A DNA stretch of 64,000 nucleotides from Adineta vaga (GCA_021613535.1 CP075495.1:10540001-10604000), one strand, 5' to 3'; counted from the stretch's first letter, positions 34,580 through 47,400 are shown. The notes: generated from the letters alone by a model not told the origin. Translations and numbers: made by a program.

Positions 34580-35254
34580 TCAATTCTTTCCTCGATGATT
34601 AAATACAATTATAACTAAAATTATTTTAGAAAAAAAAGAACCAATCGAATCTCTCAAATTTCATTAATTCAATTGACTTACTAATGATGAATAAAATAAC
34701 TCCAACAACAATACCCGCAATACAAATATTTGTCTAGAAGGAAAAAAGAAACAAAATATTCATTAGACAGAAAAATAAACTCGATATCTTTACTCGAGTA
34801 TTTTTCCACCAATATTTTCGTCGTAATTGTTTTGTTGTTTGATTATATGTTGATGCTGATGATTCTAAATCATCAGCACGTGTCATGAGATTGCTCAAAG
34901 CCACATCACGATCTAATAATCGATCGATATTTTTCTTCATTACACCAACAACTTCTTGAACTTGACCATGAAGTCTACAGAATTACGAAAAGAAATCAGT
35001 TAAAAGATAGTTAAATAAATCCATTATACTTTTTCACACTTCCACCTGCTGTTGATCGTGAAATATCACTAGATAAAAAAAGATAAATATTAAAAATAAA
35101 CACAAAATTCATTTACTTACGAATCAATTTGAATATCGAGTGCTTCATCATCATCATCTCGAATAGATGACTAGAAGTAAAAGTTTTGACGAGAAATTTA
35201 TTATTAGAATCAACTTACATAAGTTTGAGGACGTGTATAACCAGCAGTAGCCAT
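34580..35254 (-). CDS. Synaptobrevin/VAMP-family R-SNARE (VAMP4-like acidic N-terminus), 6 short exons
   Basis: QVQEVVGVMKKNIDRLLDRDVALSNL (R layer), LRRKYWWKN, C-terminal TM, DDDDE cluster. Confidence 0.88.
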
Positions 35255-35403
35255 TCGTAATTAAAAAAGAGAATCTATGAAAGGAAATTCATAATCTAGA
35301 AAACGAAATCAATATCATAAAAAATGCAAACTTAAAGAAAAAGAAAGAACGTGAAAGAGACAACATCACAAAGTCTAGTTTTTGTTTTTTGAAATTCAAT
35401 AGT

Positions 35404-36411
35404 TTAGAAACCTGGCATGCCAGCATCATCACCACCACCACCACCAGTATTCATTTTTTCACGTGATTCAGTCCAAGCTTTAGCAATTGTTCGTTTCATT
35501 TCATCATCACCTGTTTCATACATATTCTTCATCATTTGCATCAATGAATCACCTGGATCTTTGCCTTCATCCATTTTTGGTAATGATCTATCGAAATAAT
35601 TTTGAAATTATTCAATTCAATCAACTTGCTTACTTTTCCGGTGCTTTCTTTTCATCCTGATAGATACATTCCCAAGTTTTAGAATCGGCTTTTGCTAACA
35701 TTACCAGGATCATATCTTTTTTTACCTGAGAATAAAGTTTCAAATTTAACATAGACAACAAATCATTCGTTCTAATTACTTTGTAAGATGATTGATCAGG
35801 TTTTATTTCATGTAATAGACGACCTCGTTTGAAAACATAATTGATATTTTTTAAACCATTAATTTCTAATAGAAAACCACTGAAACAAGAAAAAAACAGA
35901 GATCATTCATGAAATATTTCAATAATCTTTACCGTTCTTGAAATGAACAACGAATTTGTTCAGCTGGTAAATCACTTATACCATCCAAATTTTGAACATA
36001 AATTTTCACAAATTTATCCGATTGATCCCAAGCTAAAAAGAAAAAGAAAAAGAAAACTATTTTCTAATCCAAAGCAATCTTTATTACCATAAAGTGAGAT
36101 TTCTTTCGTATATGATCGAACTGTTGATGAAGATGAAACCGTTGTTGTTGCTGTTGTTGGCTTTTTTTCTGTTGATGATGATGCGTTTGTTTGTTCGTTT
36201 TTCTCTTTAAGTGTAATCAATTCAGTTTCAAATCGACGTTGTTGAATTTCGAGAGATTGCTTTACTCGTGAACGAGTAGCTTGACCAAGTAATTGTTTAA
36301 TCTCATTAATATCCGAAGTAATCTGAAATAATAATCACACATATGTAAATTCAAATACAATAATATTTAGTTATTATTTACCTCTTGCATTTGCTGTTCA
36401 AGATTCGTCAT
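35404..36411 (-). CDS. CACYBP: Calcyclin-binding protein / Siah-interacting protein
   Basis: ATRSRVK N-terminal domain, YAWDQSDKFVKIYV CS domain, and DPGDSLMQMMKNMYETGDDEMKRTIAKAWTESREK SGS domain. Confidence 0.95.
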
Positions 36412-36469
36412 TCTCGTTGATAAATAGATCTATCTAGAATAAAATTCTCATGATTAAATTATTAAAATA

Positions 36470-37000
36470 TTACAGTAATTTTTGTTCGAATGCTTCTTTA
36501 ATTACAGAAATGACTCGTCGATTCAACTGTCTATTCTTTCCAGTATGATCTTGAGCTATAGAAGTTTTATCTATATTTGCCCAAGATTTTTTTCCTCGAA
36601 ATTGTTTCAATGGAAACAATTTTATCGAAGTTGTTTCACGATATTCATCATTATCGGGTAATTCTGTCAAATTAAAGTTTTCAAATCGTGTACATATATC
36701 ATTCTCACATGCAGTTTTGTATATATAACAACGGAAGATTTCATCATGAAATTCCAAGTCAATATAGGGACAAGATGTCAAATAATCAAGATCACAGGAG
36801 AAAAGAGTACGGGTTTCTTCATGCAATTCTTCTTTCGCAGTTTTTTCTAAACGTTGTGGATCATCAATATCATATTTGAGAAAGCCACCACAACAATTAT
36901 AATTTTGTGTATAATCGTAAACTAAAAGTACGGACGAACGGTTTGTATCAACAATGAGTACACCTGATCCTGAATAATTCCCTTTATTAGATGATGCCAT
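36470..37000 (-). CDS. Nudix hydrolase-like protein with intronless CDS (probable start 37000, directly after a TTTCAG acceptor)
   Basis: GSGVLIV...VLLV...GG...EKTAKEELHEETR is a variant Nudix box; later ETTSIKLFPL. Confidence 0.65.
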   Translation of the reverse strand: MASSNKGNYSGSGVLIVDTNRSSVLLVYDYTQNYNCCGGFLKYDIDDPQRLEKTAKEELHEETRTLFSCDLDYLTSCPYIDLEFHDEIFRCYIYKTACENDICTRFENFNLTELPDNDEYRETTSIKLFPLKQFRGKKSWANIDKTSIAQDHTGKNRQLNRRVISVIKEAFEQKLL

Positions 37001-37248
37001 CTGAAATAGAATTTCACTTCGAGTCTTTCTGCTCATTTGAGGAAAACGACAACATCAAAATGAAAACTGTAAATACTTCCTTAAAAAATTAAAAAAACCT
37101 TATGAAATCTGAAATAAAAAACAACAAATAAATTCATTTCTTTACGAAGTAAAGAAAAAGTGATCTATATGATTATTGTACAAAAGATTCTTAATTAAAC
37201 ATATACAAAAAAAACAAAATTTATCCTAGTCTTTTCCTTTTCTTTCTT

Positions 37249-37958
37249 TCAATAGATATCCGGATTGTACGGAATTAACATATTCAATCGATATGGATCA
37301 CAATAACAACGAATTATTAATGTTGCTGGATTTGCGTCAGCACTAAAAGAAAATAATTATCAAAAGAATAATTTTTGCATACGAAAAACAACAAGACAAT
37401 AAACATACTCGCATATATTATTATAATGTTTTGGAATTACTACTGCAGGAGATTTCTTTGTCATCTCATCCGTGTGTTGTATATCATTATTCGTCGAAGC
37501 TGAATCTTCACAAATCATCATCTCATCTGTGTCAGCAATGTTGTCAGTGGCCGATGAACATCGATCTGTTTCCATTGATTTAAGTTTTTTTGTATTGCAA
37601 TTTGTTGAAATCTAAATGATAAAAAGAAACTTTTCTTAGATTTCGTTAGAATTGATTTCAAAAGAACACTACGTAATCAGCATTCATCATCATCATAATT
37701 CTTTTCAATATGTTGAAGTCTATTCGATGAATGAAGACAAATACGACAAGGAGTTTTCAAGCAAATGATGTGTTGTCACAACAGAATACGTGAAGAATGA
37801 GATAGAGAGAGAAAGACATTCCTTCCACTATAAAAAATAAATTTTCATACCTCATTGGTAATAGATGAAAATCGAACAGAGGGAGGATACACCTCATCAT
37901 CTGAAAGAAATTTTCGTTTGTTGTTAAGAAAAATTTCACTAGTGGCTGTTGTTGTCAT
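37249..37958 (-). CDS. Small hypothetical protein, about 3 exons, exon structure uncertain
   Basis: MTTTATSEIFLNNKRKFLSDDE / ISTNCNTKKLKSMETDRC... / ADANPATLIIRCYCDPYRLNMLIPYNPDIY*, joined by GT-AG introns; possible bipartite NLS. Confidence 0.5.
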
Positions 37959-38031
37959 GATTAAATCTGCTTAAAAAACTTCCTATCTAGAAATAACAAA
38001 AAAAAACAAGTTTGATAATTTTATTTTTTTC

Positions 38032-40077
38032 TCAAGTTTTTTTTCGTGCAATTTCTTTTTTCAAAGCAGAAACAGCATTTATTGAATTTGACAACGGATT
38101 ATTCCGTTTCATGCGTTTAACATTGCTATGCATCGTATCCATTTTTCTCTTATTATTCATTGATGTTTGTTGTGGTTGTTCGGAATTTGTTGATGACGTT
38201 TTTTTCAATGAACTTGGAATAAGATAATCTGGTACATGTTTTAAATGTTCTTTTACTTTGACAATATGTAATGCAGAATCATGTCGAAGTAATTGTAATT
38301 CTTTTTTATTATCATTAAAATAGGTTTTTAATTTTTTTGAATTGAATATTTCTGCTTTAATTTCTTTTAAACGTGCTTCACGTATTGATATACGAGTTAT
38401 AGCTCGTAAAGCATCTGAAACTCGGTAACGAAAACCATCAACTTGTTCAGATTTAAAACGATAAAGATGAAACATATCTTCACCATATTCATTTTCCAAT
38501 TCACTACGAACAACATCGAAATAGTAGACTTCTTTTTGTGATACTAACGAAAGTGCCAATCCTGAAATTAAAAAGAAAAGAAAAGAAGATAATCATAGTT
38601 ATAAACTATAGTTTATAAGCTATCCTCGAAAACTGACCTAATTTCTATCTACATCAAAATGCTATTCACTTACCTTTCTGATCGACACGTGCTGTTCGTC
38701 CAACTCGATGAACATATGCATCGAAATCCAATGGAAAATCAAAATTGATAATATTCGCTACTCGATAGAAATCAATTCCACGTGAAACACCATATTCTTT
38801 ATCTCCTTTTCGATTAATAACGTCTGTTTTCTTCTTTTTTTCTAAAAACAACAATAAATATAATCTTCATTGATGACAAAATAGTCGATCGGTCATACTT
38901 TTTTTCGATTCTTCTTCTGTTGCTGCTTGATCTTCTCCTTCCATGTCTTGTTGCTCTTCACCATCTTCGGCTGGTACAACATTAGGTGCATCTGTTGCAA
39001 TCATTAGATCATATAATCCATCATTCTGAGAAGAAAAAAGAGTAATGGGTCATACTTATAATGAAAACTTATCATGCAATTTCTTACATATTGTTGAACG
39101 ATATGTAAACGTGAATCCATTGGTAATTCACTATTTAATAAACAAGTTTTTATATGAAATTGTTCCATTAATAATTTCAATCGATATGCTTGTTCAACTG
39201 AATTCACAAATAGAATTGTTCTTCCTACCAACAATTGTAATTTAAATATTGTAATAATTAAAACAAATTTTTGATCTTGTTCACACTGAATATAATATTG
39301 TAATAATTGTTTATTATCCGGTAAAATACTTGAATAATCATCATTTTGATTAATTTTTACAGGATTATGAAGAAATAATTGTTTTAATTGAGTAACATCA
39401 TCATTCAATGTTGCTGATATAAGAAAACATTGATAAGATTTCGATTTTGATGGTAGATATTTCGATAATTTTTTCATATCATTAGCATAACCAAGTGAAT
39501 AGAGTATATCAGCTTCATCTAATATAAATAATTCTAATGTATTTAAATTTAATGGTGATGTATGATCTTTTAAATGTTCTAATAATTTTGTTGGTGTTGA
39601 TATGATTATCTCTGGTAGTGCATTACTATTGGATAATAAAGATTGTTTTTGAATTTGTGTCGATAAAGAATTCGATAAATCATAGAGATTGATTTCTCGA
39701 CGACAATAACTTGTTAATTTCATTAGAACAGAAGCAATCTGATGACATAATTCTTTAGTTGGTGAAAGAATTAATACTCGAACATTGAGATTTGTTGGTT
39801 GTTGTTTAGTTAATAGATGTTGAATAGCTGAGATAGCATAAACACCCGTTTTACCACTACCAGTACGAGCTTTGACAAGAAGATCTTTACCCGCTAATGC
39901 ATATGGAATCGTTTCAGCTTGAATAGGCGTAGGTGAAGGCCATTGTAAATCAGCAATAGATTTTAAAAGACGATTATCAAGACCAAAATCGTAGAATGAA
40001 CGAGTTACAATTTCTTCGCCGCCGTCTTCTTCTTCACCTTCATTGATTAGCTCGGGTTCTGCAAAACGAACAGACAT
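38032..40077 (-). CDS. DDX56: DEAD-box RNA helicase DDX56/Dbp9
   Basis: [62 protein letters not shown] and HVPDYL. Confidence 0.95.
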
Positions 40078-41423
40078 CTGAAATCTACAAGAAAGAATTT
40101 GTTATTCTCAATTTAACTAGAAATTTCTCATCGAAATTATATGTTTTGTTCCGTAAAACTAAATATAATTTTCCAACTATTAGTCAACACATACAATTCA
40201 AGGAAGTTTCAAAATAATAAATAAGAGAACGAATGTACGTTTAGTTGATCTTACAACATCCAATCAACGATTACTGTTCATACCTATTGGAATGAATTGA
40301 TCCAATAAAAATTGTAACGTCTATTCAATACACTTTTTATATAATCACTTTATATCTTAATTTTCCTCTTGTTTATTTTGTTATATAAACATGATGTGTT
40401 TGTTTATTACTATTATCGGACAATAGTGACATCTATCGATCAATTTCTATATATGATTATGATCAACTAAGAGACATCGATGAAAATTATGTTTTTTGTA
40501 TCGTAATTCATAAAGATCATCTTCACTTAACTGCTATTAAAACATTGCGTGAGATTATAAATTCAAATGAATATAGTTTTCATGAAATTTTGTTTATTAA
40601 ACGTTATTTAACAAAAATAGATGCTCGATCTGTGTGAATCTTGTGTGAATCATTTTGTATAGAATGAATACTATTTATATGAAAGATCAGTGTGATATCA
40701 CCATGTGAATAGAAATGGATTTATAAGAAGAAAAAAAAAGGAAAACTTATCCTAAACAATTGTCGACAGTTATATGCTCTGGTCTGTTCTTTCTTTGCTT
40801 CTTTTTCTTTTCATCGTTCTAAAGCAAATACTTTACATTCATTATACTTACTTTTATTCTTAATAAAATCAACTGTAAAATGTCAATAATCATTACTAAA
40901 TATTTCTAAACTTTACTATTCGTATGTGTTCTGATGAAAATTTTGCTTATGGATTGTTCTTAATTATTTCTACATTCATTAAGGTAAGTATGGTACACAA
41001 AATTATATATATATATATATATGTATGCAATGCAATGCAATCCTATGTTATAAATAATCGCTGCATTCATTTTTGTCTATAAGCAATCGAGACTAGGGAC
41101 ATCTATGAACAATAAAAATTCTAAATAAAAAAGTCGTGTATTGACATTTAGAAATATACTCCATTGGAAAGTTAAAAGAACACCTAGTTTCATCAAATAA
41201 ATAAGTTAATGAATGATTGAAAATCTTTAGATTATCTCATTTTTATACCAATCAAAAAAAGTTACTTGAATCAGATGGCGTTGTTCTTTTTTGGTGAAAA
41301 AAAGTTTTGTTTTTACTGAAAATCTATCTCACAATATGTTACCCTAATTACTTTAATACAACTATTTTATAATATCATTTTTCAACGAAAATATCATTTG
41401 ATTTAGATGAAATGAAATGAAAT

Positions 41424-44400: not shown

Positions 44401-47400
44401 AGGATTTTGACTATTCTCTTTTGACAAAATTCTTTATTAAAATCATGATGAATTTTACAAAGTGAATTGCATATGAATATATCTTTTTTTTGCTTTTAAT
44501 GTTTAATTAAGTTCCTACAGCATCTATGATCAAATTACATGAAATATCTGTTGAATCTTATGTTCCACATGCTGTTTTTGTTCCATTTATTGGTTTAACA
44601 TCTCTACGAACCGATTCAGGTATCTATCGATGATTGTATTTCTACATCAAATCCATCCTTCTCTTTGTATTCAAATCTAAAACAGGTTTACCACTATCAA
44701 ATACTTCTTCATCCAATGATAATACTCCTCAAAGTATTCTTCTAAATGTTTGTGGTCGTCTTCTTCTTCTACAACAAGAACGAGGTGGTTCATCCTTAGT
44801 TTTACAAAAAACATCAAAAAAGAATACATCACAATCGGTGACCTTCTTACCACCAGTGATGATTGCTGCCTGGGTTGAATGTATTTGGACAATTTCGCAT
44901 CAAAATTCAACAAATCCATATCTATCGAATGCTCTATGGTTATGTTGTGGACTACATGGAATGAAAGTTTGGCTGCCATTATATCGTAAACTAGATGAAC
45001 CAATTTTTCAATCGCATCGAATTATGTTAACATTTGGTTTAACGATCTATCCATTAGGTACGAAACAGATGAAGGAAAATATTGAATATTAGAATTTTTC
45101 TGAATGATTCTATTTTTTGTTACAGCTGTTGTAGTAGAGGAAGCAGTTATTCTTGGTGCTATGTCGGAATTGGAAAATTTTAATTCAAATACATTTTGCT
45201 CAATTACAAAAACCGTAAGTGTTTTCTTTAAATTTATTTAATTACAATATAGAAAATCCCATTATTTAGACTCAAGTCTTTCTTAATCATGTCTTTCAAG
45301 AATTAATTCGAAAAAAGTATTATTAATTCTTAATTTCCTGTTTTTTTTTTGTAAAATCCATTTAAAAATATTTATAGCCTCGATTTCGATGCACTACAAA
45401 TTGCTCAAACATGCAAAAGTATTCCACATTTTTCTCATGTACTTGAATTACTTTTACATAAAGTACTAGAAGAAGAAGCAACTAGTACACAACCAATTCC
45501 AGGTAAATAAGAGTGATAAGACAATATGTTCTTTTCCATTGTTGATTTTATTAATTCTATTAGATCCACTTTTACCACGTGTAACTGATTTCATCAAATT
45601 ATTTCCTCAATTTCTGCGTATTATATCACATTGTGCACGAAAAACTGAAGTAGCTCTATGGCCATGTTTGTTTTCTACGCCAATTATTGGTGATCCAAAG
45701 AAACTCTTTCAAGTAAAGTTTAATTCATGATTTTCTTTTTTCAATTAATTTTTTTGTCTTATTTAGCAATGTTTAACGGATAATAATTTAGAAACAGCAG
45801 CATCCTATTTGATTATAATACAAAATTTAGAGAAAAGTGAAGTTAGTCAACAGGTACAAATGATAATGTTAGTTGTGATTGAAATCTTTCTGAAATCTTT
45901 TCAATTTAGTTCGCACAAGTTTTACTTGAACATTCATTAGAAAATGCCAAATGGGAATTAGCAACAGATATTCTTCGATTTATTCGTTCAATAGGTAATA
46001 ATTGCATTTTGAATGAAATGTGAAATATCAATAATTCATTTTTTTTATGTCTCAGATCCACAAGATTTGAATAATGATGAGTACATTCGTACATTAAATA
46101 CGCGATATGCTCCATCGAAAACGACTAAACGTGTTTCAAATACACTAAGTCATAAATCTCCATTATCACCTCATCGAGACACATTAAAATTTACCTATGT
46201 TCCAAATATACGACAGCGAACAGCAAGCGTTGCTAATGCTACAGGTAATCCATCCGCAATAATGACAATTCCTGAAGCACCACCATTACCATCATCGTTA
46301 ACACCTATAAAAGCAAAAGCATCATGGCCAGCAGCAACAGCTGTTTTAAATCATTCTCCAGTTAATGCGACAACATCAAATAATCCATCAGAATCATTAA
46401 ATACATCACTAAATGAAACTCGAGGGAGAAAAGCAAGCTCATCCGATAGTAAATCACCAAGAAAAGATAGTGAATCACAACAACAACACTCATTTGATTC
46501 ATCAGATATAACATTGATTCAGGCACCAATTACTTCATCAATTAATTTTATTCAACGAACTTTAAATCAACATGCTTTACAAGCAATTGCTAAAGGTCGC
46601 CTAAGACATATAGGTTATATGGCAGCGAATATTGCTGATTTTGATCTACTTAATTGGCTTAAAACTCATAAGTACGATAAATTTGTTTCTTTTTTTTTAA
46701 TCTTGAATATCAATTGAATAAATTAGACATGAATCTGCATTGATTATTTCAAACTATCCTGAATCACTCAAAACACTTCATATGGAATTTGATTGGCCAT
46801 TTCCAGTTTTTCTTTCGCCCAATGTTTATTTCAATCCATTATATCGTTTGTTGATTATACTTATTTGAAATCTAACTAACTTATTTTCTCTTCAGGAGAT
46901 AAAGATTCTACAACATCAAGTACAGACAATAATGGACATCATTCGGATTCAGGTCTTGGACCAAATGATCGCAATGGCGAACATGGTATTATTATTATTG
47001 AATTCGAATAAAATAGATCAATAACTATTCACTATTATTATTTCAGATGAAAAATATTCTGCTCAAGTATCTCGAGCAACATCTAAAGATGAAATGAATG
47101 TCAATTTAACACCCAAGAAACAAAAAGATTTTTGTAAGCATCTATGTCTAACTTAAAACTCGTTCGATTATTTTCGTGTTCTAGTGGATACATTAAGTTT
47201 AACATCTGAAGCGAGTTCCATGCCAGTGGATAATGAATTCGATGATCTTGTTCAAAATCGTGATATTGAAAGTCTGACTCAAGAATTAGCCAATCGTGGT
47301 CCACCATTATGTGAAAAGCAAATAAAGTAAAACCAGGAAGAGGAAAGCGTCTTTCTAAACTATGTCTTCTTCTAGATATCTTTATGATATATTTTTAACG

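Follow-up and report, generated by a model that had tools for sequence, protein, structure and literature searches.

A window of 64,000 nucleotides (nt) of the bdelloid rotifer Adineta vaga, the whole stretch analysed here (C2:10540001-10604000; assembly of 100.8 Mb in 6 contigs), was found to contain five complete, unrelated genes lying head to tail on the minus strand at positions 34580-40086, all coordinates being positions within the window. The genes encode, in order, a DEAD-box helicase, a small conserved protein, a Nudix-fold protein, CACYBP and a brevin-type VAMP, and the gaps from stop codon to ATG are 73, 248, 58 and 149 nt, the very short spacing of co-oriented genes that characterizes operons resolved by spliced-leader (SL) trans-splicing. 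We consider it probable that this is a conserved bdelloid cluster with operon-style co-transcription of at least two pairs of genes, of the intercistron-less (Ciona or SL1) type, and perhaps consisting of two or three units instead of one. An initial annotation made from the sequence had proposed one five-gene operon; its stop codons, AATAAA signal, T9 run, four acceptor AGs and distances were all reproduced on the minus strand, and the gene models and RNA introns established five real, co-oriented and tightly spaced genes. The features of the cluster, in order along the minus strand, are as follows.

40087 to 41423: divergent intergenic region from the helicase 5' end to the RIC1 start, candidate shared promoter region
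38032 to 40086, minus strand: DEAD-box RNA helicase gene, coding sequence (CDS) 40077-38032, 4 exons, 604 amino acids (aa)
40086-40085 and 40079-40078, minus strand: helicase 5' acceptor AGs
37959 to 38031, minus strand: spacer 1, with AATAAA at 38025-38020, a T9 run and a conserved acceptor AG at 37988-37987
37249 to 37958, minus strand: small conserved protein gene, 3 exons, 134 aa, invariant NKRKF..SD and RCYCDPYRL motifs
37108 to 37110, minus strand: poly(A) site of the joint helicase and small-gene RNA, at the same place as the first Nudix acceptor AG (37110-37109)
36470 to 37002, minus strand: Nudix-fold protein gene, single exon, 176 aa, ATG at 37000, second acceptor AG at 37002-37001
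36412 to 36469, minus strand: spacer 3, 58 nt, conserved acceptor AG at 36435-36434, without GT
35404 to 36411, minus strand: CACYBP (Siah-interacting protein) gene, 6 exons, 246 aa
35255 to 35403, minus strand: spacer 4, with tandem conserved acceptors AG 35297-96 and 35276-75, a short upstream open reading frame (uORF) and a cis intron at 35331-35275 (one run)
34580 to 35254, minus strand: brevin-type VAMP gene, 6 exons, about 130 aa

Expression across the cluster was followed in Logan contigs of four runs from four studies (X1, X4 and X17 among them). GT..AG joints in these contigs confirmed all 15 introns of the gene models (15/15). The runs, listed as RNA by the database's guess, are therefore RNA. 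Contigs crossed unbroken from the helicase stop (38034-38032) to the small-gene ATG at 37958, 73 nt past the stop, in 4/4 runs. One X4 contig of 2560 nt began at 40011, covered the spliced helicase, the spacer of 73 nt and the small gene, and ended at 37108 with 14 non-genomic A attached. A single spliced RNA with a poly(A) tail therefore carries both the helicase and the small gene. The small-gene exons were covered at about the helicase depth.

The end of this RNA lies at the acceptor of the next gene. The first Nudix acceptor AG (37110-37109) is found 138 nt beyond the small-gene stop (37251-37249), an AATGAA at 37138-37133 precedes the poly(A) end at 37108 by 24 nt, and an X17 Nudix contig begins exactly at 37110. 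The upstream poly(A) site (37108/37109) and the downstream acceptor abut, as in an intercistron-less operon. At the next junction the Nudix RNA extends at least to 36442 and the acceptor AG lies at 36435-34, leaving at most 6 nt between them. From CACYBP to VAMP the distance between poly(A) site and acceptor is about 28 nt, a guess from one contig end. The initial annotation had placed the spacers below those of the Caenorhabditis elegans SL2 type; with 0 nt at the mapped poly(A) site they are far shorter.

CACYBP and VAMP were joined in 2 runs. An X17 contig was unbroken over 35219-35587, and an X1 contig of 1008 nt carried the whole CACYBP CDS and its 3' untranslated region (UTR) to 35332, a GT..AG joint to 35274, and then VAMP exons 1-4; processed RNA holding both CACYBP and VAMP therefore exists. 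The 35274 joint removes the spacer intron 35331-35275 and uses a second VAMP acceptor. The acceptor AG at 35297-35296, 106 nt past the CACYBP stop (35406-35404), is present as initially annotated, and the tandem acceptor at 35276-75 had been missed.

The 5' ends of the contigs agree with the acceptors: those at 40086, 37110 and 36435 fall exactly on an AG, and the others (36431, about 35289) lie within 6 nt of an acceptor. The ends at 36435 and 36431 belong to CACYBP contigs. An X4 Nudix contig begins at 37002 with 9 letters that do not match the genome. No RNA was present upstream of 40086 in the contigs of 4/4 runs. The mRNA 5' ends are at the acceptors; a contig end exactly on an AG probably marks a de Bruijn branch point at which leader-joined (..GAG) and genomic-continuing forms coexist.

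It is highly improbable that this RNA continuity is artefactual, whether through libraries contaminated by genomic DNA or through separate transcripts assembled into chimeras. A guessed RNA status would allow for it, and a contig spanning two genes is not proof of a single molecule. However, no intron remains in the bridging contigs, one of them ends in a poly(A) tail and another has a GT..AG joint inside the spacer, and identical bridges were recovered in independent studies. Coverage was zero at 36436-36495 and above 40086, which argues that there is no DNA background.

The acceptors in the spacers were scored with a weight matrix trained on the 15 RNA-confirmed cis acceptors of the cluster genes. 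The acceptor at 37986 ranked in the top 0.3% and that at 37108 in the top 0.1% of all AGs in the window, and both equal real intron acceptors in quality. Shuffled spacers matched the observed best acceptor score in 4/2000, 12/2000, 100/2000 and 187/2000 cases; the spacer acceptors exceed chance. No GT lies between the Nudix stop (36472-36470) and the acceptor at 36435-36434, as initially described, and the CACYBP ATG (36411) follows 22 nt past this AG.

A YnAG/A acceptor (the slash marking the splice point) is retained at every junction across the bdelloid lineages aligned. In spacer 1 a YnAG/AT acceptor is invariant, and an AATAAA overlaps or abuts the helicase stop in 5/6 lineages. Before CACYBP the acceptor lies 17-25 nt from the ATG in 7 lineages. 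The tandem acceptors of VAMP are also conserved, including in its ohnologue (on C5).

In A. ricciae, Rotaria sordida, R. socialis and one metagenomic lineage, the same five genes, in the same order and on the same strand, are flanked by RIC1 (divergent) and ZIC (convergent), and the flanks in the A. vaga window are identical in kind (RIC1 and ZIC). Four further contigs, metagenomic or from Logan, show parts of this layout. At least 8 other bdelloid lineages retain the order, orientation and acceptors, and the layout is conserved across Adineta, Rotaria and metagenomic bdelloids; the gap before the Nudix gene is larger in Rotaria. The gaps across lineages are as follows.

Helicase to small gene: 63-192 nt
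Small gene to Nudix: 152-248 nt in Adineta-like lineages, 708 and 1388 nt in Rotaria
Nudix to CACYBP: 55-91 nt in 7/7 lineages measured, window included
CACYBP to VAMP: 138-229 nt

In Rotaria, an acceptor-like site about 150 nt past the small-gene stop is retained, with the Nudix gene far beyond it. The pre-Nudix spacer of the two Rotaria species contains 0.5-1.2 kb of extra sequence beyond this conserved site (L025:5612-7001; L029:6292-7001).

SL trans-splicing has been known in rotifers since 2005. The window comes from a genome with the corresponding SL RNA genes: 59 genomic copies of the rotifer SL were found at up to 2 mismatches, as against 0 in a reversed control, and each copy inspected was followed by a GTAAAT donor, serving as 5' splice site, and a conserved downstream segment. 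The leader searched for is the published 23-nt sequence (PMC3795323). From these copies the organism is a bdelloid with SL RNA genes, as the initial annotation had held. One SL family, with point variants, was found in the genome, and a pattern search of the genome returned no second leader family.

Under the interpretation we favour, transcription would enter from the divergent region, 1.3 kb long, that precedes the helicase, and would cross gene boundaries, and the downstream mRNAs would be produced by trans-splicing at acceptors located at or just past the upstream 3' end, the 22-nt rotifer SL presumably being added at these sites. With an acceptor at the upstream 3' end, intercistronic DNA is almost or wholly absent. 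The CACYBP acceptor has both its branch site and its pyrimidine tract in the Nudix 3' UTR, which extends at least to 36442, and CACYBP pre-mRNA must therefore begin within Nudix or upstream of it. Two outcomes are possible at 37110-37108: the upstream RNA would be polyadenylated, destroying the Nudix acceptor, or the Nudix mRNA would be trans-spliced. As polyadenylation and trans-splicing would use the same few bases, they would compete on one transcript, and this may keep Nudix low, as has been argued for Ciona. There may be one promoter, in the RIC1-helicase region, or additional ones before Nudix or CACYBP.

Several observations weigh against co-transcription of the cluster. The k-mer depth of the Nudix contigs was 6-10 in all four runs, as compared to 73-362 for the helicase and 127-495 for CACYBP and VAMP (contig depth, a poor measure of abundance, was used only as a consistent tenfold contrast), so that Nudix was 10-50 times shallower than both neighbours, and none of the 4 runs had a contig bridging the small gene to Nudix or Nudix to CACYBP. 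Such low depth could equally reflect internal promoters or competition in processing. In Rotaria, the Nudix gene is preceded by a spacer of 0.7-1.4 kb. RIC1 and ZIC, which are not co-oriented with the cluster, are syntenic too, and for that reason an operon is not demonstrated by conserved order alone. On C5, the VAMP ohnologue (86% identity in exon 4) functions 363 nt behind an unrelated co-oriented gene other than CACYBP, and keeps the acceptor and short uORF. All of these also speak for five independent, tightly packed genes, each with a promoter within the upstream gene or its 3' UTR and an outron removed by SL trans-splicing, the crossing RNAs being read-through or long-3'-UTR by-products. 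We nevertheless regard independent genes as rather unlikely. In none of the 7 lineages could a promoter be accommodated in the 55-91 nt before CACYBP. Moreover, the spliced RNA of the helicase and the small gene has a single poly(A) site for both, with about equal depths of the two genes, spliced RNA links the CACYBP 3' UTR to the VAMP acceptor, and helicase outron RNA was undetectable while two spacers were covered. On comparative grounds, the conserved tiny gaps and acceptors carry more weight than the conserved order. Further against the proposed processing, no SL letters were seen at the cluster acceptors in the contig output, which listed loose ends only in part. Searches of metagenome contigs for the SL joined to the conserved VAMP 5' UTR, and for the SL followed by ATAG, gave 0 matches, and no SL tail was present in the ten loci scanned (L023-L032); loci L023-L039 are all genomic, with introns present, and yielded no RNA evidence for other species. 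Exact-sequence look-ups of the Nudix protein in versions of 176, 188 and 112 aa matched no record.

The narrower version of the favoured interpretation, a strict five-gene operon with a single promoter in the divergent RIC1-helicase region and one precursor for every downstream mRNA, is possible but doubtful. The only sizeable non-coding space, 1.3 kb, is found upstream of the helicase, acceptors are conserved at 4/4 junctions, the order is kept in every lineage seen, and the low Nudix level could be explained by competition between poly(A) site and acceptor, as in the Ciona model. However, RNA continuity was lacking over the two Nudix junctions, the CACYBP and VAMP contigs were deeper than those of the helicase, and the Rotaria spacer measures 708-1388 nt. 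We would only tentatively suggest that all five genes are transcribed from the RIC1-helicase region as a single unit kept across Bdelloidea and resolved by a single SL, with cistron output set by competition of polyadenylation and trans-splicing at the same AG together with an alternative donor in the small gene. RNA contigs span adjacent genes from helicase to small gene (four studies) and from CACYBP to VAMP (two studies), and none spans either Nudix junction. The one-operon proposal is supported in part: the RNA-joined pairs and conserved layout speak for it, the 10-50-fold shallower Nudix contigs and the Rotaria spacer against it. A scan for bacterial promoters and terminators was discarded, as it gave no enrichment and is irrelevant to a eukaryote.

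In architecture the cluster matches the operons of Ciona intestinalis and the SL1-type class of the worm. In Ciona operons the upstream mRNA ends at the '..AG' of the downstream acceptor, followed by poly(A) (Satou et al. 2006, PMC1488885). As in Ciona, the genes of the cluster are unrelated and co-oriented, without intercistronic DNA, and share the '..AG + poly(A)' boundary (here 37110-37108). The upstream cistrons of Ciona mostly lack AATAAA, as do 3/4 in the cluster, and the mRNA levels of operon members are only loosely co-ordinated in Ciona, a further likeness. One SL serves all genes in Ciona; one SL family was found in the present genome, and its use at the cluster sites is probable. 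The cluster differs from Ciona in belonging to the phylum Rotifera, in comprising five genes where those of Ciona mostly have two, in that SL joining is here deduced, and in its first junction, at which a conserved AATAAA is nevertheless read through.

The SL1-type operons of C. elegans, a small minority class in the worm, resemble the cluster in their adjacent poly(A) and trans-splice sites and, as proposed here, in their general SL and mutually exclusive processing (cited in PMC1488885). SL2-type operons have polycistronic transcription and trans-spliced downstream genes, as is probable for the cluster. They differ in their dedicated SL2 and in spacers that measure about 100 nt and contain a U-rich element; in the cluster the acceptor follows the poly(A) site after 0 to about 30 nt. 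The 0 nt at the mapped poly(A) site, the at most about 6 nt from Nudix to CACYBP and the single leader family place the cluster outside the SL2 type. Short spacers (23-30 nt in Oikopleura), no operon-specific leader and housekeeping-type genes are features shared with Oikopleura (PMC1488885) and with chaetognaths, gnathiferan relatives of rotifers (PMC12460157). Chaetognath operons were defined by gaps under 250 bp and SL reads, while the present cluster is known from gaps and RNA contigs, and the SL sequences of Oikopleura and chaetognaths are independent of the rotifer SL.

No report of rotifer operons was found in the literature searched. If the interpretation is correct, the cluster would be a documented operon of Rotifera, of the intercistron-less type that is otherwise dominant only in Ciona, and would add a phylum to the operon-bearing animals. 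It would also bear on whether this type originated repeatedly, in Ciona, in the SL1 class of the worm and in rotifers, or arises by default wherever all genes share a single SL. The cluster acceptors are concrete sites for a direct test. Such an operon would matter as well for the annotation of bdelloid genes, where in some assemblies the helicase and the small gene are already predicted as one gene. In the public annotations of R. socialis and R. sordida (L028:3065-6292; L026:1-4621), the helicase is merged with the small gene, or lengthened, giving products of 722 and 779 aa; such gene-predictor fusions are expected from operon-like spacing.

The genes were identified by Pfam, PDB and Atlas queries with single exons; joined translations were made in scripts only, as a check of reading frame. 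The helicase matched Pfam DEAD (2.7e-36) and Helicase_C, and sequence searches of PDB and Atlas identified it as a DEAD-box protein, no finer; the DDX56 label of the initial annotation is putative. CACYBP matched Siah-Interact_N (1e-16) and SGS, and VAMP matched Synaptobrevin (1.7e-18), with VAMP2/3/4/8 as the closest solved chains. No second copy of the cluster was found in the genome. The helicase and the Nudix gene are each single copy, CACYBP has only a 32% paralogue, and VAMP is the only cluster gene with an ohnologue.

The Nudix start had initially been placed at 37036; it was moved to the ATG at 37000, which gives 176 aa as in almost all homologues (mostly 175-178 aa) and lies just past the second acceptor (37002-37001). 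Within the reach of the search, homologues were found in bdelloid records only. The Pfam NUDIX match is sub-threshold (E 0.0066) and the Nudix box degenerate. The AF2 model of this protein, the sole confident one among five models (pLDDT 89.5), has a Nudix fold, closest among solved structures to Dcp2, X29 and NUDT16, Nudix enzymes of RNA decapping (TM about 0.5). On the basis of this model, it may be a decapping-type enzyme in a trans-splicing animal, maybe relevant to trimethylguanosine (TMG) and 7-methylguanosine (m7G) caps.

The small gene, initially labelled an orphan, proved to be a conserved bdelloid protein. Its three exons each show protein-level conservation in A. ricciae, Rotaria and metagenome bdelloids, with the invariant motifs, and it is therefore a real gene; a scan of exon 2 alone gave no Pfam match. 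The possibility that it is a mere helicase 3' UTR was rejected, as the whole story, on the same grounds. Intron 1 has two donors. The donor at 37851 gives the conserved 134-aa open reading frame (ORF) and was seen in 2 runs (joint 37611>37851), and the donor at 37673 was seen in 4/4 runs (joint 37611>37673). Depths were alike in the 2 runs showing both (158 vs 135; 56 vs 43). The downstream donor keeps the following segment.

37673 to 37850, minus strand: 178 nt retained by the alternative donor 37673/37672, stop right after exon 1, 37-aa ORF

Intron 1 is unusually long in A. ricciae and the two Rotaria species (190-314 nt) and shorter in L031 (about 130 nt) and L034 (about 55 nt). A block in the 3' UTR of the small gene (37215-37248, minus strand, TAGATAAATTTTGT..TTAGTCA.GAATA) is kept from Adineta to Rotaria, as is one in the 3' UTR of CACYBP (35370-35395, minus strand, AGA..TTGTGATGT); in both cases the neighbouring non-coding DNA is unalignable.

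The short uORF of VAMP (ATG AAT TT..) lies between the tandem acceptors, at 35274-35295 on the minus strand, with its counterpart in the ohnologue at L022:7357-7380. It is retained in most aligned lineages, including the C5 ohnologue, and is not retained in L034. Choice between the two acceptors would keep or drop the uORF.

Upstream of the cluster, the divergent region between the helicase and RIC1 is the largest non-coding space nearby. The RIC1 exons are on the plus strand from 41424, with a Pfam RIC1 propeller match at 44634-45089. Just upstream of the RIC1 start, the translation of 41242-41417 (plus strand) matches the sequence preceding the annotated A. ricciae RIC1 start. Judging from this match, 41242-41417 may be an unannotated first exon of RIC1, or a conserved 5' region within the divergent promoter space.

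The SL copies are distributed over C1, C2, C4, C5 and C6 (e.g. L001, L003, L005-L009), often as divergent pairs about 154 bp apart, and arrays are present on C5 at 9.88-9.93 Mb and 10.91-10.93 Mb. Position 10 of the SL is A in a recurrent variant, and a conserved box, TGTAGAGACA / TGTAAAGACA, lies about 45-55 nt upstream of the SL.

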